From: Blastocystis sp. Blastoise
Lineage: Eukaryota > Protista > Bigyra: Opalinata
NCBI GenBank assembly: GCA_039096225.1
Contig: JBBPEB010000002.1
Location: 434,001 to 498,000, forward strand
Length of the DNA stretch: 64,000 nucleotides
Reading direction: 5' to 3'
Part shown: positions 3,708 through 61,815 of the stretch, in pieces
Layout: each line of letters opens with the position of its first letter
Numbering within the stretch: the stretch's first letter is position 1
Program-made: the position numbers and the translations under genes
The notes under the pieces: generated by a model
Told to the model about the DNA's origin: nothing
The model's input: the letters and a program-made list of their open reading frames with translations, nothing else
Database searches by the model: none

Positions 3708-6700
3708 ATGAGAACAAGGACATATGGCTTTCATGGTTTTGAATCTAAAAAAAAGAGTATGATAATAGAATGACTGCTTTAATTATACTAGGGATTGATG
3801 ACAGTGATGCATTCATAGATTCAGTAAACACATGGATAATAAATGATGAAAATATGTACGAACAGCCTTCAGATTTTTTTTGTGACCCATTATTCATTGA
3901 TTCACCTGCTGGACCACTGTTGAAGAATATATTTAATTCTGTATTTGTTTATCATTACTGTTATCTGTAATAATTAATATATTTTTTCTACTAGCAACAA
4001 AAATGTACTATGAATGATACAAGGGAATCAAGAATAGAAGATATAATATTTAAATATTGGTGCCAACTCAATGTTAGTAAATCAAAAATAAGAATTCTAT
4101 ATGAATTAATAAACGAGGCAATTCATATTCTAGTTCCTCAACAACCAAGTATTCCAATACCTCGAAATGGTCAGGATGTAGTAAGAAAGTATTGTAACAC
4201 ACATAGTGAAATGCCAATATATAAGAATATATATATCTGTAAAACATGTAATTCCTTTTTGGGATATAATACAGGAAGAAATTTGTTAAAACCAATAAGA
4301 GTAACTTGTCATAGAGAAGAATGTGATAATACAATAGGTATATTATGTATTTTATTATCTTAAATAAATTTCAGCCATTATTATATGTTTATAATATAGG
4401 TACAAAAATATCAATAGTACCTCTCATACCAAGAATTCGTTATCTATTATCTTCCAAAGATTTAATACAGGATATATCATTCTATGATAAAAACGAAATA
4501 TTTTCTGTTTTATCTTTAGGACAACAGAATTCTGAAAATATTCCATTATATATGTCAGGAGGTAACTATAGAAGATGTATTGAATCTGTGATTAATAATG
4601 GAGATATATTTCTGGTATTTAGTCTAACTTGTGATGGTATATCTCCTTTTAGTAACCCAGTTTCTAATGATAATGCTTCTTCTTTTCCAATACTTCTAAA
4701 ACTTCTCAACTACAATACTAATAGGAAAATCGATACTCGTTCTTATTGGCCATACTGTATTACAAATGAATCCTATTCTAATGTTGTTTTGGATATTATC
4801 GCTAAAGAGTTTAAACTACTATCTTCTGGTATCATTATGGATGTATATACAAATGGACATATAGAATCAAAACGAGTTGTTGCTATACTTTTGAATATAT
4901 ATGGTGACTGCGCGGCAATAACTCAAGTAGCTAGTTTTACAGGATCATCTTCATTATTTCCATGTCGTAATTGCGAACTACAATGGGATAGGAAGAATGA
5001 AACATTTCATAGTGGTATAAAGTGTTCATATAACAAGATAAAGCAATATATATCACTTGATACAGAAACAGGTAATATCATAACAGTCTCATATCCATCT
5101 TTCAGCCGAATTAATACTTATTCAGCAACATCATCAATATCGTCACAAATAGATCAGTGTAATATCTCCAGTCAGATAGTATTAAATAATATATCTAGTA
5201 AATATTTATATAAGGATGCTATTAATAATAATGATTATCCTATAAGAACTAAAGAATCTATTATTCAGAATAGAAATGAATGTGTTAAGGATAAATCTGT
5301 TAAAGGAGTTAAGCAAGTACCTGGAGTTTTTGAATCTTTGTTTTATTTTGATGCAGCAACTTTCTATAGTATAGACATAATGCATCTATTTAACAATATA
5401 GCAACTTTATTATTAAGTTTATTATTTCATTATAATAGTAATACATACATATCTATATTATCTAAGAATAAGAAAATAAATCCAGAGAACACACTGAAGA
5501 AACTTTATCTTAGTAAAGAAAACATTCTAATACTTCAAACAAGAATTCAAGGAATAAATACGTTATATAATAAGAATGAATATGAATTTCGTTATATTCT
5601 AGATGAAAAGAAGTTTAATCATATGTCTTCTCATACACGTATCTTCTTTATTTCCTATATTCTTCCTCTTATAACATATGGATTTACTGTTAAGGATTCT
5701 CCAATTGTTTTACTAATAAGTCCTTTTGCAACTGTTGTTCGTCAAATACAGCGTTATAATGGTAATACTGAAAATCATCTATTGCAAGTTCTCAAAGATC
5801 AATGTTTCTTATTTTGTTTTCTATGTGAACTCTTATTACCTAGAGAACTCATTAATTCCCAAATTCATCTTATTCAACACCTTCATCTAACTATTCAAAA
5901 TGTAGGATCATTACAATATGGATCAACATATGAATCTGAACGCTATTATTCATTTTTAAAACGATCTACATTTGGGAGACAACATTTTAATAATTCGTGT
6001 ATAGTATTCATAATAGAAAAAGAGGTGATTAGTATTAGTAGTAATACTGTTTCTATTCCAGATCATATTAATGATTCTCAAGTCTCAATTGAAGATAGAT
6101 CAGCTGAGAATGATAATATTAGTGATTATAATTATATAAATTATCAGGAAGATAATATTCAAGGTTTTAAAGAGATAAACATAAATAAAGGGAGTATACA
6201 TATGATAAAAGGTATAAGAGCTATGGATAGGATGGAACTCTCAGAATTGGAAATAAAAGATGTTTTAAAGATATTAATACATTCAAATAATCATATTATT
6301 AATAGATTATTATTCAAAAATATAAATATAAATAATATAGAAGCTGTATTAGAAGAAACTAATAATGAAGATGTATTTCACAGTCTAGTGAATAACTTTA
6401 GAAACATTGAAACATATTTCTATTCTGAAATCATAATAAATAGATATAAAATATTCTCATCATCATCAGAAGATGAAGGAGTAGAACAACGTGATAATTC
6501 ATATATTATGTATATTACTAACGACATAAATGGAAAATCAGAGATTCATTTGATAAAGGCATTGTACTATCTCCAAATTGGTAATTTAATATTAATAAGA
6601 AAACACGAATATCCTTTGGCACATGAATCAATGACTAATTTGTATTACATTATAAAAGATTCAAATAGAATAATGTCCAGAGAAAATAAATTTTCATCAA

Positions 6701-6940
6701 GTTTCTTATCTATAGTGGATATTGTACCCGAAAATATAATTATTGCTGATATTCACGAAGATAAACATAATATAGTAAATGAATCTTTTGAGACAGAATT
6801 GGTATTTAATTACTTTATACTTTTACATTATATATATATAGAATCAAGGAAAACAAAGGAAGAAAGAAAATCATACCGTTCAAGGAAATAGTGTGACTAC
6901 CAATACAGTATTCATGGCACGTTACGAAAGCTATATTTAA
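3708..6940 (+). CDS. CACTA/EnSpm (CMC superfamily) DDE transposase A, 4 exons; one frameshift in an A8 run at 3747-3754
   Basis: Exons 3708-3940, 3995-4337, 4400-6801, 6842-6940 splice in frame. Motifs: CxxC..CxxxxC, LTCDGISPF, GDCAAI..FPCRNC, IDIMH, HLIQHL..YESERYYSFLK. One extra A in exon 1 restores the frame (mutation or sequencing error). Confidence 0.85.
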
Positions 6941-15340: not shown

Positions 15341-15660
15341 AAATGAATGTTGACTTTGTTATACTTAAAACTTCAAAATTCTTTTAAAAAGTATGAAAAT
15401 GAGTTTAAATTATTATATTATGCTAATTTAAATGAATTTTATAAATTAAAAATACTTCAAAGTACTTCACATTGTAACTCATTTCTGAAGTTATTGACTT
15501 TAAAAATTCACAAAATGCTTTAAACAGTTGTTTAATCATTACTAAATACAAAATATATTTTAAAAATAATTTTTTGTGATGAATATAACTCAAAATATTG
15601 TTTTTAATTAAAAGATAATTTTTATTTGTTTTCATTTCTTATTTAAAAAGTCTAAAATAA

Positions 15661-15728
15661 TCTTATATCAGGAATTGAACCTGATTACAATTATAAAATA
15701 ATTGTAACTCTCCATATAGAGTATAAGA
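15661..15728 (-). ncRNA. tRNA-like cloverleaf within Helitron H1 (atypical; TTT at the anticodon position)
   Basis: Minus strand: TCTTATA / CTCT-ATATGG-AGAG / TTACAATT-ATTTTAT-AATTGTAA / TCAGG-TTCAATT-CCTGA / TATAAGA; all four stems fully Watson-Crick; B-box GGTTCAATTCC. Expression unknown. Confidence 0.6.
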
Positions 15729-16603
15729 AATTAATATTTAATAAATAATATATATAATATATAATATATAATATATAATATATAATATATAATATATAAT
15801 AAATGACTCATATTAAAAACTATATATATAATATATAAGATAAAAGATAAATAAATATTCTTTATATACTCTTTATGCAGCCGCGGTCCGGGGCCGTTAG
15901 GCACTGGACCTGCGGCGTGACCCTAGTAATAATAAATATAATAATAATAATAATAATAGTAATAATAATAATACTAAATAATATACACAAACAAAAGAAA
16001 TGATAATTTACCTATATAATACCAATAATCGTTATTATTATAAAAGGAATATAATAATAATAATCTACATCAATAAATAAAGAGTTATTTACCTATAATA
16101 ATAATAGTAATAATAGTAATATATGATAAGGTATATAATATACTAAACATGAGTGTATTGATTGATAAATCATTGAGAATTGAGTGTGATGTTAATAACA
16201 TTCAAAATGCTAGCTATATACATAAAATAACTAAATTAGCAAGTTTTTAATAAAAATAAATGAAATATAATGAAATATTAAATAATATATACATAATAAT
16301 GAAATAATTGTTAATAAAAAATAAATGATAACAGCAATATAAAAAAAAAGAACTAAAATTTGAAAAGATTTTTATTATTGTTTGTATAAAAAAAAATATT
16401 TATCGCAAAAAATTTCTAGAAATTTCTCAAATAATCATATATAGACAAATATTTACCAATGATATTTTTTATAATTTATGGCTATTATTTTTCAGTACTA
16501 CTTCGTCATAACAAATCTTTAAATTCGTGATTATGACGCTATTATTTTTGTAGGAAAATGTGTTTTTATCAAATGCGTCATCCATTTTCTTCCAATCATA
16601 TTT

Positions 16604-47847: not shown

Positions 47848-48505
47848 TTACAATAAAGAATATATTATGTATATATTTATATTGTTAATAATTACTTTAT
47901 AGATTATTCAAAAAATATGAAAACAGTATATCTTATTGATATTTATATTTTTAAATGAAAAATAATTAATATTTTGTGTTTTGTTTTGTTATTATTTTTT
48001 GAAACTATTTCTTTTAAACGACAATTTTCAACTGTTAAAAATACTGTTGTCAGCAGTATTTTATCTGAAAAGATATTCAGATCATATCCAGTTTTGACTG
48101 CTTATTTTTTACTGATTTCATATAAAGTCAAAAATTCTCATGAGGGGTATTCTTATAATCGCGATTATGCCCGACAGTATAAAAGAAAAATAAATATTAA
48201 GTTTATATAATTTTGATGGAAACAAAAGAATTCTATAAAATATACGACAGTTTTTATTGGTTAAAAATTCAAATTTAATCCTTTTAGCATATTTTAGTGG
48301 CCTAGTCGATTAAGTATTTTTTTGTGGGACCGTTTTAGGTCTTTAGACATGAAATTTTTGAAAAAAAAAAAGTATCATAATGGATTTTTTATATAGTATC
48401 TTAATATATTATCAGTTTAACTTAGATATATAACACAAAAAAAAGTAATCAGTTCATTTATATCAGTTCAATTTGTGTGCTATCAATCTTTCTTTATATA
48501 CAAGA
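47848..48505 (-). mobile_element. 5' portion of an H3-family Helitron
   Basis: 48240-48505 resembles 43450-43708 (tttgtgggaccgttttagg, aaagtaatc.gt.catttatatcagt); minus 5' end a|TCTTGTATATAAAG. Left boundary uncertain. Confidence 0.6.
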
Positions 48506-48872
48506 TTTTAATTATCATTAAAATAAGGATTAAATAAATGAGAAAATGATGTTTTAAAAAGTAATGAACAAATAAAAACCCCAAAACATATCAGACACAA
48601 AACCATTTTTTTTTTTTGAAATTTTATTTTTTGTATTTAAAAAGGTCTGACTAAAAAAAATAAAGACTACTCATTAATGAAAATTATTAATCCAGTGAAA
48701 ATGTATATTAGTGCAGCTATTTTTATTTTTGAATAGAAAATTGATATATTTATATAAAATAATAATAAATTATATTTAATAAGTGATAACTGAATAAGAA
48801 AAGAGAAAAAAATTAACAAATAGAAGTGATATAAGTTAATAGTATATGTAAATAAGATAAAAAAGAATATAA

Positions 48873-48945
48873 GCCTCGATAGCTCAGTCGGGAGAGCGTA
48901 TGACTGAAGATCATAAGGTCCCTGGTTCGATCCCGGGTCAAGGCG
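48873..48945 (+). tRNA. trnF: tRNA-Phe (GAA)
   Basis: GCCTCGA TA GCTC AGTCGGGA GAGC G TATGA CT-GAA-GA TCATA AGGTC CCTGG TTCGATC CCGGG TCAAGGC G; T-rich tract follows; C5:A68 acceptor mismatch. Confidence 0.93.
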
Positions 48946-48977
48946 TAATTTTATTTTTATTTATTTTTTTAGATTCT

Positions 48978-50902
48978 ATGAAGCATAAGGATCATAATGG
49001 TGGTCCTTTGGAGTTCAAACTCTACACCAAAAATATTTTTCCTAAATGGGAAAAATATCTTTATAGATTTCAAATTTGGAAATCTCAGTTCAGAGATGAT
49101 GGTCTACAACAGCTGTATCAAAAGTCGTTGTCAAACTATCATTCTTCTTCACTGAGAAAACTGAGTTTAAAGAGATCTACTCATGTATTCAGCTGGAAGT
49201 TTCCTCAAAATAAAAATTTTCAAATTTACAGTCAAAATTCAAAAATAATTAGAAAAATGAAAAATTTGAATTTTTCATGTTCTTCTTCTACCCCTTTTTA
49301 TTTCTCTAATAGAGAAATTAAGAATTTCAAAGCTTCTAATAATGGAATCTACACGTCTTCCGCCATTGAATCTCAAGATCCAAACCACAAAAATTTTACT
49401 CATTTACTTAATCGGCGAAGTGAAGTGGTTCGAAAATTGGCTTCTAAGGTTCCATCCACTACTGATAAGGGTCCTCATTACAAAAAACCATGTTTCAGCT
49501 CAAAAGCTCAGAAACAAGAGAGAATGGTGAAATACATTATGAAAAAGGTCCTTTCCAAAAATATCAAAATTGGTATCCGTGATGGTTCTTCTTACTCTAC
49601 ATCAGATAATGGTCTTCATTTAAATTCTTCTATGGTTTCCAAAAACAGAGAGAATGGTGACTTTAAAGAAGTTTCAAAAAATGATGAAAATGGTGTGGAA
49701 AGCAAGATAATGATGAATACGAATGGTTGTGATGATACTAATACTTCAATGGTTCCTAATGAGAGAAAAGAAGCCAAGAATGATGATGAAAATAATATAT
49801 ATATAGATGTTATTAATGAGAATACTAATATGAATAATAATATAATAGATATCAGTAATGATGAAAATAATATAAATATTAATTATATAGATAATAATAA
49901 TGACGAAAATAATATAGTCCATAATTATGTAAAGAATAATAAGAATATAGATAATAAGAATATGGATAAGAATACTAATGAAATTGGTACTAATATGGAA
50001 GATAATGATAATAATTATATAGAAAGTGATGATTCTTCATATGTTCCAGATTCTGAAATGGATGATGTTGATAGTTATACCTCTTCTAGTTATTATACAT
50101 CAGATATGGATGAAAGTGAAGATATAAATGCATTCCAGAAAGATGAAATAGTGAAGATAGATGATATAAGTAATGAAAATAATAATATAAATAATCCTCT
50201 AAATATACTTATGAATGATCTTCTTAATGATGTTAATAAGTATATAGATAAAAATGAATATATAGATAAATATAAATATGAAAATAAAATATCAAATGAT
50301 ATAGATAATAAAGATATGAATAATATTTCTAATACTCCTATTACTCCTAATAACACTATAACTCCTATAACTCCTATAACTCCTTCTATTCCTATAACTC
50401 CTTCTACTCCTAATACTTCTATAACTCCTTCTACTCCTAATACTTCTATAACTCCTTCTACTACTATATCTCCTAATACTCCTATAATTCCTTCTACTCT
50501 TATAACTCTTATAACTCCTTCTACTGCTAATACTTCTATAACTCCTAATACTCCTATAAATGTTTCTACTCCTATAACTTCTTCTACCCCTATAACTTCT
50601 GGTACTTCAATAACTCCTATAACTCATATTACTTCTATAACTCCTTCTATTCCTATAACTCCTCTTGATCCTATAACTCCTATAACTCCTTCTACTTCTA
50701 TAACTCCTATAAACCCAATAACTCCTATTACTCCTATAACTCCTATTACTCCTATAATTCCAATAACTACAATAACTCCTATAAATCCTATTACTCCTAT
50801 AACTCCTATAACTCCTTCTACTCCTATAACTCCTATTACTCCTATTACTCCTGTAACTACTATTAACCATTTATATATTAATTCTCATCTAAATGTTAAT
50901 AC

Positions 50903-50936
<34 letters not shown>

Positions 50937-51240
50937 ATTAACAGAGATACTGACATTAAGAGATTTAATAATATTAATAAATTGTCTAACAATAATAATA
51001 ATAATAATAATAATAATTCTTTAGATATTAATTCCTCAACTAATATAGATGAATCTACTAATATTAATAATAATATGATAATAGATTCTTCTTCTTCTGA
51101 TAATAATAATAATAATTCTACAGATATCGATATTAATAATACTAGTATATATGATAATGATATTGATTCTACTGATATTAATATTATAGATATTACAGAA
51201 GATGAAACAGATGCTATGAATACCTTTGATGATCATGAAG

Positions 51241-51306
<66 letters not shown>

Positions 51307-54300
51307 GAAGAAATAGATCTGATTCAATTTCCTCTTCTTCCTCTTCCTCTTCCTCTTCCTCTTCATCTTCCTCTTCCTCTTCATCTTCTTCTTCATCTGG
51401 AATGGATATAGAAGAATCAAATATTAATAATAATAATAATGATATTGATATTGATAATATGCCTTCTATTATTCCTTCTATTATCAGAAATTTAAATAGA
51501 AATACAAATTCTATTCAACAAACTAATAATAATAATAATACTTTTCCTCCAAATAATAATCAAACTATAAATCAATCAATTCCTAATAATAATATTAATA
51601 ATACTATAAATAACATTGATCTAGATTTATCTCTTAATAATCATATTAATAATCCTATTATTCCTAATTATCTTCATATTCCTATTCAAGATAGAATATA
51701 TCCTTATAATTTAGATAATCTTGATTTACCTACTGGAATAATAGAAAACAATATGATGAATACATTATTTAATTCTAATAGAAGAGTATTAACATTAGAT
51801 TCTTCTATTTATTCTATAAATTCTATTCCTAATAATATTCCTAATTTTCCTACAGAATGTAATTGGATATTTCCTTGTAAACCAGATTTCTTTATTGGTT
51901 ATAATGAAATACGAAATCATGAGAAAGGAAAAGTATGGAAATATTTAAATGAAATACGTGAATGTTTTAATCATATAATATTAATGTTATCTTGGAATAG
52001 ATCTATTAATCATTCTAATTTAACAAGATTAGATGCATTCACTTTATTCTTTCCTAATATAGAAAAGAACGCTATAGATTCATTATTACGTAAGATAAGA
52101 AGTAATTATAGACAAATAAATAGAGATACTAATATTCCTACTTTAGGTAATAGAAATAATAATCGTATTCCAAATAATCAAAGATTAAGAAATAATCAAA
52201 TACAAAATGGTTATATTAATATTAATAATAATAATAATAATAATAATATTGATATTAATATAAATAATTCTGATATTAACTCTAATAATAATAATGATAA
52301 TAATTCCAATAATAATGAATCAAATGAAATGGAAATAGATAATGAAATAAATCATTCTAATAATTCTAATATTAATAATATTTCTAATTCTTCTAATTCT
52401 TCTAATTCTAATAGTCATATATCAAATAATAATAATAATAATCATAATAATAATCATAATAATATATCCTCTCAATCTTCACTAGATTCTGATATTGATA
52501 TAGATATGAATTTAAATAATTCTAATTCTAATAATTCTAATTATAATAATAATAGAAGAAATAATAATAATAGAAATAATACAAGACCTTCTAATATTCC
52601 TACTTTACAAACTAGAATAAATCATAATCCTAGAACAGTTCAAGGTAGAAGAACAAGAGAATTAGAATTAAATAATAATAATAATAATATGAATAATGAT
52701 AATGAAATGGAAATAGAAAATGAAGAAGAAAGAAATAATAATATTAGAAATACTAATGATAATAATAATAATCCTAATAATAATAATACAGAAATAGATT
52801 TAATATCAACTTATTCAGAAAATAATATTAATAATATTATTAATAGATCAAATAATCTTCATTATACTTCAAATGTGAAAAGAAGATTATCTAGATTAGC
52901 TTTAAAGCGTTGGTCTAATAATAAAACAATAAATCGATTTAATAGATTTGTAGAAGAGAGATTATATGATCATATTCGATGTTATCCTATAGAAGATTCA
53001 AATCATAATCCTACTATGACTCCTGAATTAATAGAATCTTTTAATAAGAGTTGTGAATATGTATTTAATGAAATATATAGATGGATATCACAATGTGATA
53101 GAGGAAGAATAAATCATAATGATAGATATAATAATAATAATAGAGATGTAGGTAGTTCAGCTAATGAAGATCGTAATTATCACAATGAAACTAGAAATAG
53201 AAATCATCATTTTCATGATAATAATAGATTTAATAATAATAATAATAATAATAGAAGATATATTAGAAGATATAATAATAATAGAAATCAAAGAAGATAT
53301 AATAATAATAATAGAAATACTAGAAGATATAATAATAATAATAATAATAATAATAGAAATCATAATAATAATAATAATAATAATAATAACAGAAATACTA
53401 GAAATTTAAATACAAATAGAAATGAAAGAAGAATGAATAATGAAATGGAAATTGAAATTGAATCTGAAAATACTAATAATACTAATACTAATTCTAATCA
53501 AATTAATTCTTCTAATTCCAATACTTCTAATAATGATACTCAATCAGAAAGAGAATCTAATATTAATAATTCTAATAATAATTCTAATACTCATTCTAAT
53601 AATAATACTCATAATAATAATAGATATAATAGAAATAGAAATAATAATTATCATTCAAATAATAATAATAATAGATTTAATTATAATATAAATGATGAGA
53701 ATGAATTGAATGAAGAATTAATAAATTCAGAAATTCAATATTATAAGAAAGTATCTAAACTTCTTAATGAATGTATTCAATCTATTAATACATTTACTTC
53801 TCAAATATCTATGAATAATAATAATTCTATTTCTATTCAATCTTCTATAAATATATTTATAGGTAAATTAGTAGAAATATATGAAATGAATACAGAAGAA
53901 CCTATATTAGGTACTATATTAGAAAATCTAAATATATCAAATATTAATGAATCTATTAATATAATGAATATAGATTTATGGAATGATAGTAAGAATTCAT
54001 TAAATCATTTTTATGAAAATTCAAAAAGAATGATTGAAGATTTATTAAAGAATAAAGAGAATATAAAGAATCATAGAGAAGCATCTAAAATAAGAAAAGA
54101 TTTTGAAATTAATTCTAAATCTACTCTTCGTTCTCAAATATGGAATAATAATACTGGAGAACATTGTACTATTCCTCCTGATACTCTTACTCAATTATAT
54201 TCTGATTTATATTCCTCTCATGAATCTAATACTAATTCTACTTCTACTCCTCCTCCTCTATGGTTATCTACTAATATTTCTACTCTACCTGAAAATTCTT

Positions 54301-56995
54301 CTTCTTTCAATATTATTAAATTTAAAGATGTTACTAGAATTTTAAGGAAACTTCCTAATAATAGTACTCCTGGTGCTAATGGAATTCCTTATGAAATCTA
54401 TAAAAGAAGTACTTCTGCTAGATTATTATTAACTTATATCTTAGAAGTATGTAGATATAATGAAATTACTTTAAATAGTTGGAATGAATCTATTACTTGG
54501 TTATTAGATAAAAGAAAAGATGATAAATCTTCTTTAAATAATTGGAGACCATTATGTCTTCAAAATGTAGAATCAAAAATATTTTCTTCTCTTATAGTAG
54601 ATTATATTAATAATATTAATAATTCTTATCATATTATATCTTCTTATCAAAAAGGATTTACTCCTAGTGTAGCTGGTTGTGAAGATCTTAATTATATTCT
54701 TAGTAATATCATAGCTGATTTTAAATTAAAAAGAATAAGAAATTCTAATTTATTAATTAATTTCTTAGATTTAGAAAAAGCTTATGATACTGTTCCTCAT
54801 AAGATATTATTAAATATTCTTCATATGATGAATTTTCCTAATAATATTATTAATATAATAAAGAGTTGGTATGATAATGCTTCTACTAAAATTAGATATG
54901 ATAATCATCAATATACTTCTTCTATTCATCTTCATAGAGGTATTCGTCAAGGTGATCCTCTTTCTCCTCTATTATTTAATATTATTATAGATCCTCTTCT
55001 TAAATATATTAATAATAATAATAATATGAAAGTACAAATAAAAGATAATGATACTATAATATTAGAATCAAATGCATATGCTTATGCTGATGATATAGTA
55101 TTATTATCAAATTGTACTAATGATAATAATATTTTATTAGAAAGAGTAGGTGAAGTATTAGATTATTATTCTATGAAATTGAGTGTTTCAAAATGTAAAT
55201 GTATGGGAATGAAGATGAGTGATGATAGAAATAGAAAATTAGAATATACTATTACTCCTCCTATTTATAAGAATGAATCAATTCCTATAATGAATGAAGA
55301 AGAGACTGTAAGATATCTTGGTTGTCCTATTTCTTATATATATACAAAAAGAAGAGAATTTTGGGTAGATAATATAAAGAAAGTAAGTGAACGATTATCT
55401 TGTTTAAATAATAGTTTATTAACTCCTTGTCAAAAAATTAATGTAGTAAAACAATATATCTTACCTTGTTTAGAATTCTTATTTAGAAATGGTGATATGA
55501 ATAAGAATGATATTACTCTTATTGATACTACTATAAAACAATATATAATGAATTGGTTAGGAACTGGTACTAATCTACCTTCTCACTTCTTTAGTACTCC
55601 TATTAATAATGGTGGTTTAGGTATTATGCAATTAATTGATAGATATTATATAGGAAAGATATCTTTAATTGCTAGAATGGCTGTTTCTGATGATCCTCAA
55701 ATTAGAAATATTCTTCAATATACTATTAATAAATCTTCATTAACTAATGATTTATTTATGATACCTAATCCTATTGATTACTTAGATAATAATAATGATA
55801 ATAATAATAATATTCCTGAAAATCATAAGAATGATTTGTTATTCTTTCAATGGTTAATTAATGATAATCATAAAATAGTAAAAGGAAGAATAGAAAATGG
55901 TAATATAATAATACATGATACTCCTTATGAATCATTAACAAATTTCTTTCCTTATCTTCGTAAAGCTGTAGATGCTGCTTATAAACTTGGTGTTAATATA
56001 GCTTATATAGATGTTAATGATATATCTTTAGGTATTAAAATAAAATTAATAGATAAAGATATTCCTGAATTAAATACTACTATTCCTTATGAGAAAGTAA
56101 GAAGAACGATATGTAAAGAAATTAATAATTTATTGAAGAAGAAACATTCAAAACAATTATTAAATAATTATGAGAATACTTATTATTATAAATATTTAGA
56201 TAATAACATAGAAAGTAATAGATGGTTATTTAATGGTAAGAGATGTCATCCTATGAAATATTCTGCTTTAATTAATATAAGAATGAGAACAGCATTTACT
56301 GGTTCTCAATCTTTCTTATATAATAAGAAGAGATCTCCTAAGATTAATGATACTGAAGCTCTTTGTCCTTATTGTTTAGAACATAATAAAAGAGCTATTC
56401 ATAATTTGAATCATATTCTTACTACATGTGATAGAATTACAGATAATAATGGAATAGGTGGTTTAATTACAAATAGACATAATCAAATATTAAATAATTT
56501 ATATAAGAAATTAATAAGAAAATATTAATTAGGAGAATATAGAATAAGTATAGATAAATCATTATCAACTTCCTTTGGTAATGATATATTTAATAGAAAT
56601 ATGAATAATCTTCGTCCTGATATAGTAATTATTCCTACAAATCCAAATAACAAAGATATAATAATAGCAGATGTAGGTATAGCATATGAAGGATCTTCTA
56701 ATCAAATAGATCCTCTTCAAACAATGAAACAGAAGAAAGATCATGATTATGATAATGTAATAGAAATATTGAATAATAATGGTTATAGAGTGAGTAATTA
56801 TTCTTTAATCTTTGGTTCTTCTGGAGTTATTCCTAAAGATACTTTAAATAATCTTAGAAAGATATTAGATATTTCTAAGAAGAATGTATCTTATTATGCT
56901 TCTATATTAAATAATATTATCTTAGATTGGTCATATAAATTCTGGTTAAAATCTCTTCCTGATAGTCATACTATCTCTACTCATTTAAGAGATTC

Positions 56996-57033
<38 letters not shown>

Positions 57034-57044
57034 TATCTCAATAA
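48978..57044 (+). CDS. Retrotransposon polyprotein: low-complexity N-terminus, reverse transcriptase, CCHC knuckle, restriction-like endonuclease; one in-frame TAA at 56526-56528
   Basis: [62 protein letters not shown]....C, RHN, then the same frame continues to [19 protein letters not shown]. Likely start ATG 48978 (shared with copy 2). Confidence 0.9.
50330..50862 (+). repeat. Coding 9-bp minisatellite (actcctata, TPI repeats)
   Basis: Dozens of TPI/TPS units; shorter version in copy 2 at ~60250-60555. Confidence 0.85.
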
Positions 57045-58333
57045 TTTAAATTAATATATCATATTAATTTATCTTTTATTGATATTTTATTCATTTACTT
57101 TCTTTTATTTTTAATTCTTTTCTACTATTCATTCTATATTATTTTCAAAATTCATATTTCTATATATACTCAAAATCAATCATTTTCTTCTTATTTCTTC
57201 ATTATATTCTTCTATTATCAATTCTATTCAAATATCTACGATTTATATGTAATTATCTTTATGTTAAATGAAGTCTTCAATTTTACTAGATTTTATATAT
57301 ATACCTTACATATAGTATTAATTATTAATTTTATTCAAAATTTTATGATTGTGTTCCAAAACACAATTAATAGTTGATATTATATTAATATATATATAAT
57401 CAATTGAAATTTTCAAATTTAGAACTCTAATGGAATCAGGAAATCAATTTATGTTTTGGAATATATATATACTTTTAGATATACTTTTTCACATAGACGT
57501 CCTCTCTAAAATCGATTTTTCATTACCTTCTAGGTGGTCTTATAGGCTCTATTATACCTCAAACATCTTGTATTGAGCTATATTTGGTTTATTTATCATT
57601 CAAATTTTGATTCTGAAAATTTCATTTTTTATGACATTTTTCACTATTTCAAAATTTTGACTAAGTTACCTAAAAAATTAATTTCCATATTTGTGTTCCA
57701 AAACACAATAAAATCCAACTAGGATATCTATCAACTACAAATAAGTTGTTTTCTTCGAATTTAGAATTCTAATAGAGTCAATAGAACTAACTTAATGTTT
57801 TCATATTATCTCTCCTATTACTAAGTCAAGCCGAAATTAACTTAAAAATATCGAGTTTTCCAAAATTTTAAAATTTCATTATATACTACTCCTTCCTCTT
57901 CATATTAATATATATTCCAATTTTCGTAAGTCTCTCTACTTTACTACTTATACATCATTTTATACTAAAATTTTCAACATACTTCTCATTATTATTGAGT
58001 TTTCTCAATATTCAAAGCGCACATGATTGTGTTTCTTGGCAATAATATTGTTCATTACTTCTATTATTACATTTCTTATTAAATAATTATTCTCATATTT
58101 CTTATTTTTCATCTTCATTTTTATACTTTTATCAAAATCATGATTCTCATTTTTACTCATATACTCTATATTCTATTAACTGATTCTCTCTTAAATATTT
58201 TTCATCCAAAACTTATTTTTTCTCATATGATGAATTATTTCATCTCATTATTAAATCCATCTTTTTTATTCTATTTTGATCTCTCTTTCTCTCTATTATC
58301 ACTTTTTAATACAATTCATTTTTTTATATACAT

Positions 58334-58377
<44 letters not shown>

Positions 58378-58947
58378 TTTCTCTCCTCTATATATATATA
58401 TATAAACTATATTTTATTTTTCTTTTATATATTTATTTTATAATTTTATTTAATTTAAAATAGGACATATTTTAATATAATATTAATTAATTTTAATAAT
58501 AAAATTAAAATATTTTTTTATAATATTTTTTTATATAATATATTACTATGCCTTATATTTATATATATATACATATATATAAATATAATATTATGACCTT
58601 TGTTTTATTAATAATATAAGATTTCTTTAATTTTATTATCATAAATTTTATATTATCTAAAGATATATATATATATAGATATCTTATCATATATATAGTT
58701 AGGAACTATATAGATCAAAAACTCCTACCTATCCTGTCCTATAGGCAAAAAATTAAAAAACTAAAACTTTTTTATATAATTCTTGTTTTTGACGTCCCTC
58801 TTTGGATGTCTTTTTCTCCATGATGACATGGAGTTTTTGTTTAGTTTTTGATCTTAAAATAAAGTTGACTTTCTCAATTTTATTATTATTTTATTTTTAT
58901 TTGTGTTTCTCTGTTCCTTATCTTTCTTTTCTCTTGTTTAAATTAAT

Positions 58948-58970
58948 TGGTTCGATCCCGGGTCAAGGCG
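58948..58970 (+). other. Duplicated 3' fragment of tRNA-Phe (positions 51-73)
   Basis: tggttcgatcccgggtcaaggcg, identical to 48923-48945. Confidence 0.95.
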
Positions 58971-60975
58971 TAATTTTATTTTTTGTTTATTTTTTTAGAT
59001 TCTATGAAGCATAAGGATCATAATGGTGGTCCTTTGGAGTTCAAACTCTACACCAAAAATATTTTTCCTAAATGGGAAAAATATCTTTATAGATTTCAAA
59101 TTTGGAAATCTCAGTTCAGAGATGATGGTCTACAACAGCTATATCAAAAGTCGTTAAATGAAAAGAATTCTTCATTGGTGAGATATATGAGATTAAAAAG
59201 ACCTCACCATGTTTACAGCTGGAAGTTTCATCAAAACGGGAATTCTCAAATTTGCAGTCAAAATTCGAAAAGAATTAGAAAAAATAGAATTGCTGGAAAT
59301 TTCTCTTATTATTATTCTCCCATTTATATAGAGAATAAGAAATCAAACAAGTCCAAAGCTTCTAATAATGACTTCTATAGGTTTTGCGCCACTCGTTTAC
59401 AAAAACCAAACCAAAAATTCTTTCGCAATTAGTTAATCGGCAACAACATGTACCTCGAAAATGTGCTTTCATGATTCATACAAGTAGTGGTAAGGATACT
59501 GAACTCAGAAAACCATGTTTCAGATCAAAAATAATGAAACAAGAGAGAATGGTGAATTATGACTTCAAAAAGTCCTTTCCCAAAAAATGAAAATTCGTAA
59601 ACTACGTGATTCTTCTATCTACTCTTCAAATGATAATCAATGTTTAAATACTTCAAGTATCACTAAAAACAGAGAGAATGGTGACTTGGAACATATTTCA
59701 AAAATTGAAGAAAATGATGTAGAAAGTAAGATAATGATGGTTAACAATGGTTATGATGATACTAATACTTCAATGTTTCCTGATGAGAGAATAGAAACCA
59801 AAATGGATGAGAAAATGTATATATATATATAAATACTACTGATGAGAATAATAATATCGATACTAATACTGTAAAAGATGTAAATGATGATGATAATCCT
59901 ATAGTAAATGAAATGAGTACTGTGGATACTAATACTACTGAAATGGGTAATAATATAGATTATAATGATGAAAATAATATGGAGAGTGATGATTCTTCAT
60001 ATGTTCCAGATTCTGGAATGGATGATAATGATAGTTATACTTCTTCTAGTTATTATACATCAGATATGGATGAAAGTGAAGATAGATGATATAAGTAATG
60101 AAAATAATACTACAAATAATCCTCTAAATATACTTAAAGATGATCTTTTTAATGATGTTAATAAGTATATAGATAAAAATGAATATATAGATAAATATAA
60201 ATATGAAAATGAAATATTAAATGATATAGATAATAAAAATATGAATAATACTCCTATAACTCCTATTAGTCCTAATATTCCTACAACTCTTAATATTTCT
60301 ACAGCTTTTATAACTCCTATAACTCCTAATTCTTCTATAACTCCTAATACTCCTATAACTCCTAATACTCCTATAACTCCTATAACTCCTATCAATCCTT
60401 CTACTACTAATTCTTCTATAACTAAATAATACTTCTATAACTCCTAATACTCCTATAACTCCTTCTATCCCTATAACTGCTATAACCCCTATTACTCCTA
60501 TTACTCCTATTACTCCTTCGACTCCTATTATACCTATTACTCCTATAACTCCTAGGATTCCTACTACTCTTTTGTATAATAATATTATACATAATAATAA
60601 TGTTAATATAAACATGGATACAAATATAAATACAGTTAATAATGAAAAATTAGTTATTAATCCTATAAATATTAATAATAATAATAATAATATATCTATA
60701 GATAATAATTTTACCTCTCCTTTGAATAATAATATTCCTTTAAATATTATTCCTTCTACGAATATAAATGAATGTATTAATTTCAATAAAAATAGTATGA
60801 TAATAGATTCTTCTTTTTCTGATAATACTATAAATAATAATAGTCAAAATATTGATATTGATAATACTACTATAAGTAATAATGATACTTCTACTGATAT
60901 AAATATTATAGATGTAACTGAAGATCAAACTGATACGATGAATACGTTTGATAATAATGAAGATAATGAAGATAA
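58948..60975 (+). pseudogene. Second, diverged and frameshifted copy of the RLE retrotransposon (5' part), interrupted by Helitron H4
   Basis: ATG 59004 [10 protein letters not shown]..; colinear with 48923-51245 with several frameshifts; stops at gataa|tc. Confidence 0.88.
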
Positions 60976-61815
60976 TCTTATATATAAAAGGGATAAGCTC
61001 GCACGAAATTATACTGATATAAATGGACCGATTACTTTTTTGTGTCACGTATCTATGTTACAATGATAACAGATTAAGATACTAGATAAAAAACGTATTA
61101 TTATGCGCTTTTAAAATTTTCAATAATTCCACGTCTAAGGGCCTAAAACTGTCCAACAAAAGAAAATTTAACCGACTCGACCACTAAAATGCGATAAAAA
61201 TCAAAATTTGAATTTCTATCCAATAAATATCTTTCGTACACAAAATTTCTATTTATTTTTCATTTTCTCAGAAATTTCTTCATTTTTTACATTTTTCTTC
61301 TTAAAATTCTTCTTATATTTTTCAATAAATATTTTTTATAATTTTTATTCTTGACTTTTATTTTTCTTTATGATGTACTTTATATTTGTTATTAATTATT
61401 AATATATTTTATTTTAAATACATAACATTTTTCGCCACACACAAAAACGACTTTTAAAATATAAGAAACAATTTAGACCAGTAATCAGTTATCAAAGTGA
61501 CTTAATAGACTTAATTTTAACCTATATACATAAAATAACCTAAATAATGATAATGTATGAAGCTTTGAAAAAATTTGATCCACAAAGTTTTGAGATATCG
61601 GACACATTCTCTTTTGAACCTTTTAAATTTTAATGAAAACTATCTGGATCATCATGATAACTCATGAAACCATCCTAAAAGTCATTAAAACCTGTTTTTG
61701 ACATGTTGAAAAATTAATAAAAAACTTCAATTGCGTGTTCTGTCAACATTTTTTATTTTATTAAATTTTAAACGTTACAGGGTTTATTGTAAGTGTTTAT
61801 ATTCATGAATTATTT
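60976..61815 (+). mobile_element. Helitron H4 (H3 family), 5' ~840 bp only
   Basis: a|TCTTATATATAAAAGGGATAAG; colinear with the reverse complement of ~42870-43708 until the hairpin at 61815. Confidence 0.85.

Follow-up and report, generated by a model that had tools for sequence, protein, structure and literature searches.

The window, by which we mean the whole 64,000-nucleotide stretch of Blastocystis sp. "Blastoise" DNA analyzed here, contains a complete tRNA-Phe(GAA) gene that is followed directly by a 10-kb retrotransposon copy (here referred to as W1), an exact second copy of the last 23 nucleotides of the tRNA gene, and the start of a second element (Table 1). The host is a tortoise-gut isolate. 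A dictyostelid origin, first suspected from the AT-richness and poly-Asn, was rejected, as a Helitron protein encoded in the flanks is 98% identical to NCBI proteins of Blastocystis sp. "Blastoise". The 23-nt repeat covers part of the T-stem, the T-loop, the 3' strand of the acceptor stem, and the discriminator base G73, and both copies carry A68, which is mismatched with C5 in the acceptor stem of the tRNA. This arrangement, with the repeat at the same tRNA position on both sides and the mismatched A in both 3' fragments, was described in the original prediction and is seen in the sequence. W1 has neither a poly(A) tail nor terminal repeats, and repeats are found only between units. The T-runs of its 5' untranslated region (UTR) start directly after G73, and the element starts in the same way after every tRNA-Phe gene or fragment. 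The two element 5' ends that follow the 23-mers in the window are 98% identical over 181 to 185 nt. A tRNA-like or minihelix fold at the 3' end was considered and rejected, as the fold of the last 98 nt of the element together with the 23-nt fragment is not significant, its energy being no better than that of shuffled sequences (z = -0.22).

Two stacked elements had been proposed for the window. Tandem stacking is real, as seen at C15 and C4 (see below), but the second unit in the window is a diverged remnant. Past the first 185 nt, its identity is ~75% at the DNA level and 56 to 63% at the protein level, and no reverse transcriptase (RT) was found within the next 57 kb. The places matching the dispersed repeat that breaks this unit include the break points of the C4 element copy.

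Table 1. Features of the tRNA-Phe locus and of element copy W1
Feature	Positions	Strand	Basis
Complete tRNA-Phe(GAA) gene, 73 nt	48873-48945	+	ARAGORN; Rfam RF00005, 61.6 bits; sequence
23-nt repeat, copy 1 (tRNA 51-73)	48923-48945	+	Exact match to 58948-58970
Element copy W1, 10,002 bp	48946-58947	+	Alignment to other copies; junctions at 13 loci
5' UTR, 32 nt, T-runs T4/T5/T7	48946-48977	+	Sequence
Single ORF, 2,688 codons	48978-57044	+	One in-frame TAA at 56526-56528
Conserved N-terminal block A, helical	51846-52109	+	39% identity to P0213/P0214 (tRNA-Lys family)
Conserved N-terminal block B, helical	52878-53099	+	~40% identity to P0213/P0214; mean pLDDT 56
RT domain	54522-55331	+	Pfam RVT_1, E = 5e-33; YADD box at 55077-55094
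CCHC zinc knuckle	56364-56429	+	Motif; aligned with relatives; profile matches R2 C terminus
Restriction-like endonuclease core (RPD ... D-V ... K)	56613-56750	+	Motif; profile match
3' UTR, 1.9 kb, ending in ...AAATTAAT	57045-58947	+	Sequence
23-nt repeat, copy 2 (tRNA 51-73), read as target-site duplication	58948-58970	+	Sequence
Second unit, diverged 5' remnant of a family member, ~2 kb	58971-60976	+	98% identity over first 185 nt
Unrelated dispersed repeat breaking the second unit, outside the element	60976-61815	.	85-90% matches at six other places

Protein domains and class of the element

The reading frame of W1 is interrupted once; in other copies, it is open throughout and comprises ~2,685 codons. 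The best solved relatives of the RT domain are R2 proteins (E = 6e-38, versus 1e-28 for LINE-1 ORF2p). A CCHC zinc knuckle and a PD-(D/E)XK-type restriction-like endonuclease (RLE) lie C-terminal to the RT. The P, D, and K residues of the RLE are invariant in an alignment of 12 relatives, and a profile of the CCHC-RLE region matches residues 906 to 1098 of the R2 protein 9nl2 (E = 1.1e-26). A non-LTR-type RT, a CCHC motif, and an RLE in a single frame of 2,685 codons, with no LTRs or TIRs, are the hallmarks of the RLE supergroup (R2/NeSL/CRE/HERO/R4), and Pfam shows no Exo_endo_phos match, that is, no APE domain, in the element ORF. As judged from its sequence, the element is a single-ORF RLE-bearing (R2-like) non-LTR retrotransposon, in agreement with the class originally assigned to it. 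It lacks the R2-clade site in 28S rDNA, all copies being located at tRNA-Phe. Its domain set and its junctions suggest that it integrates by target-primed reverse transcription.

Pfam gave no match at all in the N-terminal 1,800 amino acids, and so neither the zinc finger(s) nor the Myb domain of R2; structure models are poor in this region, and distant folds are possible. The Ulp1 (C48) protease of NeSL and the one to three zinc fingers of Utopia were likewise not detected by Pfam. Block A lies inside otherwise unalignable low-complexity sequence and is common only to the W1 family and a sister family at tRNA-Lys; it is a candidate target-binding domain, with a poor AlphaFold model (pLDDT 48). 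The possibility that block A is a zinc finger was rejected because its cysteines are not kept in the tRNA-Lys family.

Target genes and arrays across the genome

The 33-Mb genome contains 15 identical copies of the 23-mer. Seven are part of complete tRNA-Phe genes, the other 8 immediately follow the 3' end of an element, and a search with the reversed pattern as a control gave no match; the repeat is therefore not due to chance. Elements or arrays are carried by six of the seven tRNA-Phe(GAA) genes found genome-wide, and the seventh is empty. All 13 element 5' ends follow a full tRNA-Phe gene or the 23-mer, and the 3' junctions are at the site in 8 of 8 cases. The predicted specificity for tRNA-Phe is borne out by these data: the element occupies one position in one tRNA species, each copy was found at a tRNA-Phe gene or 23-nt fragment with none at a non-tRNA site, and an empty gene is available for comparison, as expected for a tRNA-gene-specific retrotransposon.

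No element sequence lies within 1.5 kb of the empty gene (C25:44575), and all seven tRNA-Phe genes are identical, C5:A68 included. It had been suggested that A68 came with an element-borne 3' end from a GCCTTGA isodecoder and that positions 5 and 68 should be compared between occupied and empty genes. The identity of the empty gene at both positions removes this argument, and no other tRNA-Phe 5' half was found in the genome within three mismatches, so that the isodecoder proposal is not supported. Two complete arrays end with the element, the 23-mer, and the native trailer ATTTCTTTTT, and the same trailer lies behind the empty C25 gene. Array ends of this kind are the hallmark of a 23-bp target-site duplication. 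Of the two routes originally offered, a long target-site duplication and an element-borne tRNA end, the former fits best, while the latter survives in an RNA-borne form as a less probable option.

Full-length copies are arranged in tandem at C15:712-753 kb and C4:2.40-2.42 Mb, and the array at C23:70-90 kb is made up of a single full copy and, behind it, a short remnant. Array blocks in this genome are 10 to 40 kb long. Regeneration of a full-length tRNA gene and of the element's own target, together with stacking of units, is thus present as predicted. Over the last 4.2 kb, divergence is 0.7 to 1.5% within one array and 1.2 to 1.6% between loci, and arrays mix different element 5' variants, which argues for separate insertions and not for local duplication. 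An upstream flank of 0.6 to 1 kb is common to four of the six occupied loci (81 to 99% identity), and there have therefore been fewer independent events than loci; the upstream flanks of three occupied loci are unrelated. The one public sequencing run found, of low share and uncertain type, yielded contigs with the tRNA, a single tRNA-to-element junction contig at depth 2, and low-complexity noise, which do not bear on transcription.

Proposed integration at tRNA-Phe and alternative explanations

Taken together, we consider it reasonably probable that the element represents a site-specific RLE-bearing (R2-like) non-LTR family of Blastocystis sp. "Blastoise" that has tRNA-Phe(GAA) as its sole target and rebuilds the gene through a 23-bp duplication. 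The tRNA-Phe gene in the window is the regenerated target. In the proposed mechanism, reverse transcription of the element RNA would be primed at a bottom-strand nick made by the element protein; this nick would lie across from tRNA positions 50/51, which belong to the 5' strand of the T-stem and adjoin the B box. The top strand would be cut 23 bp farther downstream, exactly after G73, and repair of the staggered cut would duplicate tRNA positions 51 to 73, giving a complete tRNA gene, the element, the 23-nt fragment, and the native trailer in this order. The 32 T-rich nucleotides at the start of the element would take over from the Pol III terminator of the gene as a surrogate, and the gene should stay usable and continue to be expressed. 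Since the complete target would be restored upstream of the element, later insertions would stack as head-to-tail arrays. The sister family would act likewise at tRNA-Lys(UUU). Given that the element starts one position after the discriminator, it is conceivable that the 5' end of the element RNA is defined when RNase Z trims a cotranscript of tRNA and element, by analogy with the role of the ribozyme in R2.

Alternatively, although we regard this as unlikely, the element template could carry the tRNA at its 5' end through cotranscription or read-through, with the cDNA end annealing to the tRNA and both strands being cut near 50/51. Such a homology-made 5' junction would parallel a proposal for R2 with upstream 28S sequence. 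This route would give an identical final structure; homology-guided joining predicts uniform, full-length 5' junctions, as seen in 13 of 13 cases, and repeated copying from element RNA could homogenize the seven identical genes. However, the T-runs right after G73 should halt Pol III read-through, inner array members have just 23 nt of tRNA upstream, and A68 and the native trailer are already present in the empty gene. Furthermore, Rfam shows the tRNA alone at the element 5' end, with no ribozyme or other known RNA family. Because all 23-mers are identical, target-derived and RNA-derived copies are indistinguishable, and no 5'-truncated element copy, which could separate the two models, was found.

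It is far less likely that segmental duplication and unequal crossing-over multiplied a single ancient insertion beside tRNA-Phe, with no ongoing specificity. The flank common to four occupied loci would fit such a history, and unequal exchange can enlarge tandem arrays, but the flanks are unrelated at two further occupied loci and at the empty locus, the divergence between array neighbors is similar to that between copies on different contigs, neighbors differ in their 5' variants, and the same geometry recurs in the tRNA-Lys family and in distant relatives from other samples. An integrase-type island of the kind that targets tRNA genes in bacteria, with an attP-like site containing the tRNA 3' end, would resemble the observed order in its attL/attR ends but is refuted by the gene content, the sole ORF encoding RT, CCHC, and RLE and no recombinase, and the host is a eukaryote.

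Relatives and known systems

The preferred reading, a family that rebuilds its target gene by duplication, can be extended to relatives. A sister family, 43 to 44% identical over the RT-RLE region and known from coordinates and short pattern matches, occupies five of the six tRNA-Lys(UUU) genes in the same geometry. At five loci, the distance between a tRNA carrying the anticodon loop CTTTTAA and the start of the RT match of this family is exactly 5,097 bp; the T-arm of tRNA-Lys recurs every 8,591 bp, and the fragments start at G50, one position off the tRNA-Phe site. The 11 nt behind the tRNA are identical at occupied and apparently empty sites, and the 5' boundary of this family is therefore provisional. 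Five distant relatives from other AT-rich samples (29 to 32% identity) have a tRNA-like 3' end immediately before their start and a T-run just behind that end, and one of them has the same tRNA-like fragment at both contig ends. These fragments, which were assigned by reading the T-arm and acceptor sequence, are only 12 to 36 nt long, and for this reason Rfam found no tRNA on the contigs. A tree built from unnamed database proteins places the W1 family in a separate clade of 8 members that contains neither C48-bearing nor Myb-bearing proteins. The five relatives fall into one clade with an SH-aLRT support of 97, and this grouping may be inflated by common AT-rich composition. One relative carries a UCH-type protease. 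We tentatively raise the possibility of a distinct, unnamed RLE clade in Blastocystis and other AT-rich organisms that might spare the host gene by tying the second-strand cut to the exact tRNA 3' end and bringing its own Pol III terminator, with near-full colonization (6 of 7 tRNA-Phe and 5 of 6 tRNA-Lys-UUU genes) without loss of function.

The Blastocystis genome paper mentions neither tRNA nor retroelements. Site-specific RLE elements such as R2 are under development as tools for gene addition at safe genomic sites. A natural relative of R2 whose target is a short, highly conserved Pol III gene, restored after insertion, would be a different safe-harbor solution, and the tRNA-Phe site offers a compact DNA target of ~25 to 75 bp for biochemistry. 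The family also shows how a small set of essential genes can be occupied by a parasite in almost all of its copies, and two sister families with different tRNA targets allow the determinants of target switching to be mapped.

R2 proteins (9nl2, 9dou, 8gh6, and 8ibw) are the closest structural-sequence relatives of the RT and the CCHC-RLE C terminus. Both R2 and the W1 family have a single ORF, no poly(A), and a strict site in a multicopy RNA gene; unlike R2, the W1 family shows no N-terminal zinc finger/Myb match, targets a Pol III gene, and has a 23-bp duplication. R2Bm leaves a 2-bp deletion at its target, and R2 inactivates the rDNA unit that it enters, whereas the W1 family leaves the gene complete.

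The tRNA-targeting elements of Dictyostelium and yeast Ty3 are of the APE or LTR type and are guided by Pol III factors, with Ty3 landing just upstream of tRNA genes. In common with the W1 family, they exploit tRNA genes as safe places for insertion in a compact genome. However, Dictyostelium TRE5, TRE3, NLTR-A, and DGLT-A insert outside the tRNA gene, from 2 to 6 bp up to ~100 bp upstream or downstream (PMC5006619), whereas the W1 family inserts inside the gene. The non-LTR members among them do not belong to the RLE group. Dada DNA transposons insert sequence specifically inside tRNA and snRNA genes (PMC3706591 and PMC8869645) but encode a transposase and no RT or RLE, both of which the W1 family has.

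Among RLE elements, published passages describe a 20-bp target duplication in reptile Utopia (U2 snRNA genes) and occasional tandems of Utopia, and a paper title reports an "exceptionally long" target duplication for R9 (28S). With the W1 family, these share the RLE, small or ribosomal RNA genes as sites, and long duplications, but the targets differ, and the passages concerned do not mention gene regeneration together with a terminator. As for the suggested novelty, no tRNA-Phe-specific family appears in the literature searched, but RLE families for other tRNA genes are on record: Kojima and Jurka (2015; PMC4640811) list the NeSL-like NeSL-1_TV for tRNA-Pro in Trichomonas and LIN15_SM and LIN25_SM for tRNA-Arg and tRNA-Glu in a planarian. 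Like the W1 family, these have a single ORF with RT, CCHC, and RLE and a fixed position in one tRNA species; as far as the published descriptions go, the W1 family is set apart by its target tRNAs, a stramenopile host, a 2,685-aa ORF, and a near-saturated gene set. In their machine-read S6 figure, the 5' and 3' junctions of LIN15_SM have a long overlap, as here, and, as far as the figure is legible, the 5' junction lies inside the T-arm, so that the tRNA 3' end is missing from the upstream copy. In contrast, the duplication of the W1 family ends exactly at G73, leaving the gene whole with a T-run added. Thus, while tRNA-specific RLE elements were already known, what is new here is that the gene is spared, that a terminator is probably supplied, as the T-runs suggest, and that the gene set is nearly saturated.

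The element and its tRNA-Phe locus

The ORF behind the complete tRNA-Phe(GAA) gene of the window contains a reverse transcriptase (RT) domain detected by Pfam (RVT_1), the closest solved relatives of which are R2 proteins (E 6e-38), with LINE-1 ORF2p behind. C-terminal to the RT are a CCHC knuckle and an RPD...D...K motif, and a profile of the C terminus, derived from an alignment with 12 relatives, matches residues 906-1098 of the R2 protein 9nl2 (E 1.1e-26), the C-terminal region that holds its knuckle and endonuclease. Judged by these sequence features and its single frame, the element is thus a single-ORF non-LTR retrotransposon of the restriction-like endonuclease (RLE) type, as the original prediction had proposed. 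It is not an R2 element in the strict sense, since it has no 28S target and no detectable zinc-finger/Myb N terminus. The N-terminal 1,800 residues, in which Pfam finds nothing, are largely Asn-, Ser-, and Thr/Pro-rich low-complexity sequence; two short helical blocks within them, for which structure models are unreliable, are kept in a sister family at tRNA-Lys(UUU) genes. The copy at C23:70045-80018 (contig C23) has one uninterrupted frame of 2,685 codons, and at least one further copy has an open frame.

Features of the tRNA-Phe locus (window positions) and arrays of the sister family (contig positions)
Feature	Coordinates	Remarks
tRNA-Phe(GAA), complete	48873-48945	73 nt; ARAGORN and Rfam both
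T-rich leader		32 nt; starts directly 3' of G73
ORF	48978-57044	from ATG; one in-frame TAA at 56526-56528
Untranslated tail	ends 58947	1.9 kb
Exact repeat of tRNA positions 51-73 (23-mer)	58948-58970	
Sister-family tandem arrays	C10, C13, C14, C29, C33, C23, e.g., C13:618989-636253	8,591-bp period; behind tRNA-Lys(UUU)

The predicted layout of tRNA, element, 23-mer, and second element start is correct in its positions and repeats: the tRNA is complete, the repeat is exact, and the leader and ORF start recur behind it with 98% identity over 181-185 nt. The second unit does not stand as a full element, as identity past its first 185 nt is ~75% for DNA and 56-63% for protein, an unrelated dispersed repeat breaks it at ~60976, and no RT of this unit was found within the next 57 kb. 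Elsewhere in the window, ARAGORN called a tRNA-Lys(TTT) at 15659-15731 (-) that is extremely AT-rich and dissimilar to the nuclear tRNA-Lys(UUU) elsewhere; it may represent a tRNA-like repeat or a fragment of organelle origin.

Occupancy of tRNA-Phe genes and probable target duplication

In a census of the whole Blastoise genome with exact and looser tRNA-Phe patterns, the tRNA-Phe 5' half occurred seven times, and the looser patterns revealed no further tRNA-Phe genes genome-wide. An element lies next downstream of six of the seven genes; the empty gene, at C25:44575, has no element similarity within 1.5 kb. The 23-mer is present 15 times, always exact, within genes (7) or directly after element 3' ends (8). 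Two complete arrays end with element, 23-mer, and the trailer ATTTCTTTTT, which is also found directly behind the empty gene; this is the structure that would be expected of a 23-bp target-site duplication.

All seven genes are identical, including the C5:A68 acceptor-stem mismatch and the G73 discriminator seen in the window; the usual tRNA-Phe discriminator is A73. The mismatch had been proposed to mark an element-borne 3' end, but since the empty gene also carries C5:A68, it is most simply regarded as native.

Arrays contain from one to at least four units, and divergence among copies over the final 4.2 kb is 0.7-1.6%. Neighbours within an array differ about as much as copies located on other contigs do, and distinct 5' variants are mixed within single arrays, which argues for arrays built by repeated insertion rather than by local duplication. 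An upstream flank of 0.6-1 kb (81-99% identity) is common to four of the six occupied loci, and the number of clearly independent flank classes is only three. This flank corresponds to 48179-48872 of the window and to matching sequences in the fetched stretches L041, L042, and L024; within it, the part at 48243-48516 is similar to the dispersed repeat breaking the second unit at 60976. Either the tRNA-Phe loci were duplicated or another repeat adjoins tRNA-Phe genes. One element copy (L026-L034; C4:1502047-1586106) lies in pieces over 84 kb with nested insertions between them, including a Helitron Rep/Hel ORF (L029:1-3318), and this region also holds an ~32.6-kb internal duplication repeating three of the pieces.

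The best reading of these sequences is target-primed reverse transcription with a 23-bp duplication. A bottom-strand nick at tRNA position 50/51 and a top-strand nick after G73 would generate the duplication; the rebuilt gene would retain its A and B boxes, with the element's T-runs becoming its terminator, and stacking would follow because this gene remains a target. The main rival, homology-guided 5' joining from an RNA carrying tRNA sequence, would yield the same product, and because the 23-mer fragments are all identical and no 5'-truncated copy was found, the data are compatible with both.

The sister family and other mobile elements

A second RLE family, revealed by a protein search of the genome, has at least 11 copies, mostly open frames of ~2,400-2,640 amino acids, with 47% identity to a shorter RT-RLE query; its NCBI members P0213 and P0214 (~2,550 amino acids) share 43-44% identity with the Phe family across the RT-RLE. 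At five loci, the start of the RT match is at a distance of exactly 5,097 bp from a 72-nt tRNA that has the same orientation and the anticodon loop CTTTTAA, and the tRNA-Lys T-arm repeats behind each unit, mostly in 8,591-bp steps. GGGGTTCG is preceded by TCA in full tRNA-Lys genes versus CTT in 10 of 10 fragments, which places the first base of the Lys fragments at G50, one position away from the Phe site. Five of the six tRNA-Lys(UUU) genes are occupied, whereas no pattern-matched tRNA-Lys(CUU) gene is near an RT match. Since most copies are open with identical scores, the family is probably young.

Blastocystis sp. Blastoise was isolated from tortoise gut and has a GC content of 21-23%, and its genome paper contains neither "tRNA" nor "retro." A Helitron protein encoded in the flanking sequence shares 98% identity with NCBI proteins of this organism. 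A 1,476-amino-acid Helitron Rep/Hel ORF (Helitron_like_N and PIF1; L045:1301-5728, C23:91301-95728) sits ~11 kb downstream of the C23 element array. Long ORFs with weak matches (E ~6e-4) to DUF4218, a domain linked to CACTA-type transposases, lie at 4345-6891 (+) of the window and L041:6871-8547. Just beyond the window, an ORF at C15:502299-503609 (L035:4299-5609) weakly matches DUF5906, a D5-like primase/helicase family; several long ORFs without Pfam matches surround it, and the region is possibly a virus-like or Polinton-like insertion. The small contigs C9 and C12, with dense tRNA matches in mirror image, probably represent the mitochondrion-related organelle genome in two copies.

Relatives and known tRNA-targeting elements

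An exhaustive search revealed no relatives outside this genome closer than 32% identity. The five nearest proteins are all on AT-rich contigs, four of which start with a tRNA-like 3' end (T-arm, acceptor strand, G) with a T-run within 3-5 nt; the fifth has the same ~30-nt tRNA-like 3' part at both ends. In the RT tree, these five group with both Blastocystis families in a single clade (SH-aLRT, 97), separate from C48-bearing and Myb-bearing proteins; the grouping may be inflated by common AT-driven composition. Relatives in L055:99-6023 (P0365) and in L046 have an N-terminal UCH/USP-type protease domain in the place of the NeSL Ulp1 protease, whereas the Blastocystis families have neither. A metagenomic stretch (L054:1-19740) carries head-to-tail 3,075-amino-acid Myb/zinc-finger R2-like ORFs with a period of 9,492 bp, only 264 nt separating successive frames and no tRNA detected in it.

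Elements that target tRNA genes in yeast integrate outside of them. The same holds for those of dictyostelids (PMC5006619), whereas the Phe-family element lands inside. As a kind, tRNA-gene-specific RLE retrotransposons are already known, since Kojima and Jurka (PMC4640811) describe NeSL-like families that specifically target genes for tRNA-Pro, tRNA-Arg, and tRNA-Glu. For LIN15_SM, the S6 figure of that paper, as read by machine, places both junctions inside the tRNA, so that the gene would be left unrestored, whereas a complete gene stands in front of the Phe-family element. Long target duplications are likewise already known for Utopia and R9. As far as the literature searched shows, what is new is the gene-sparing design, together with the targets, the host, and the level of occupancy.
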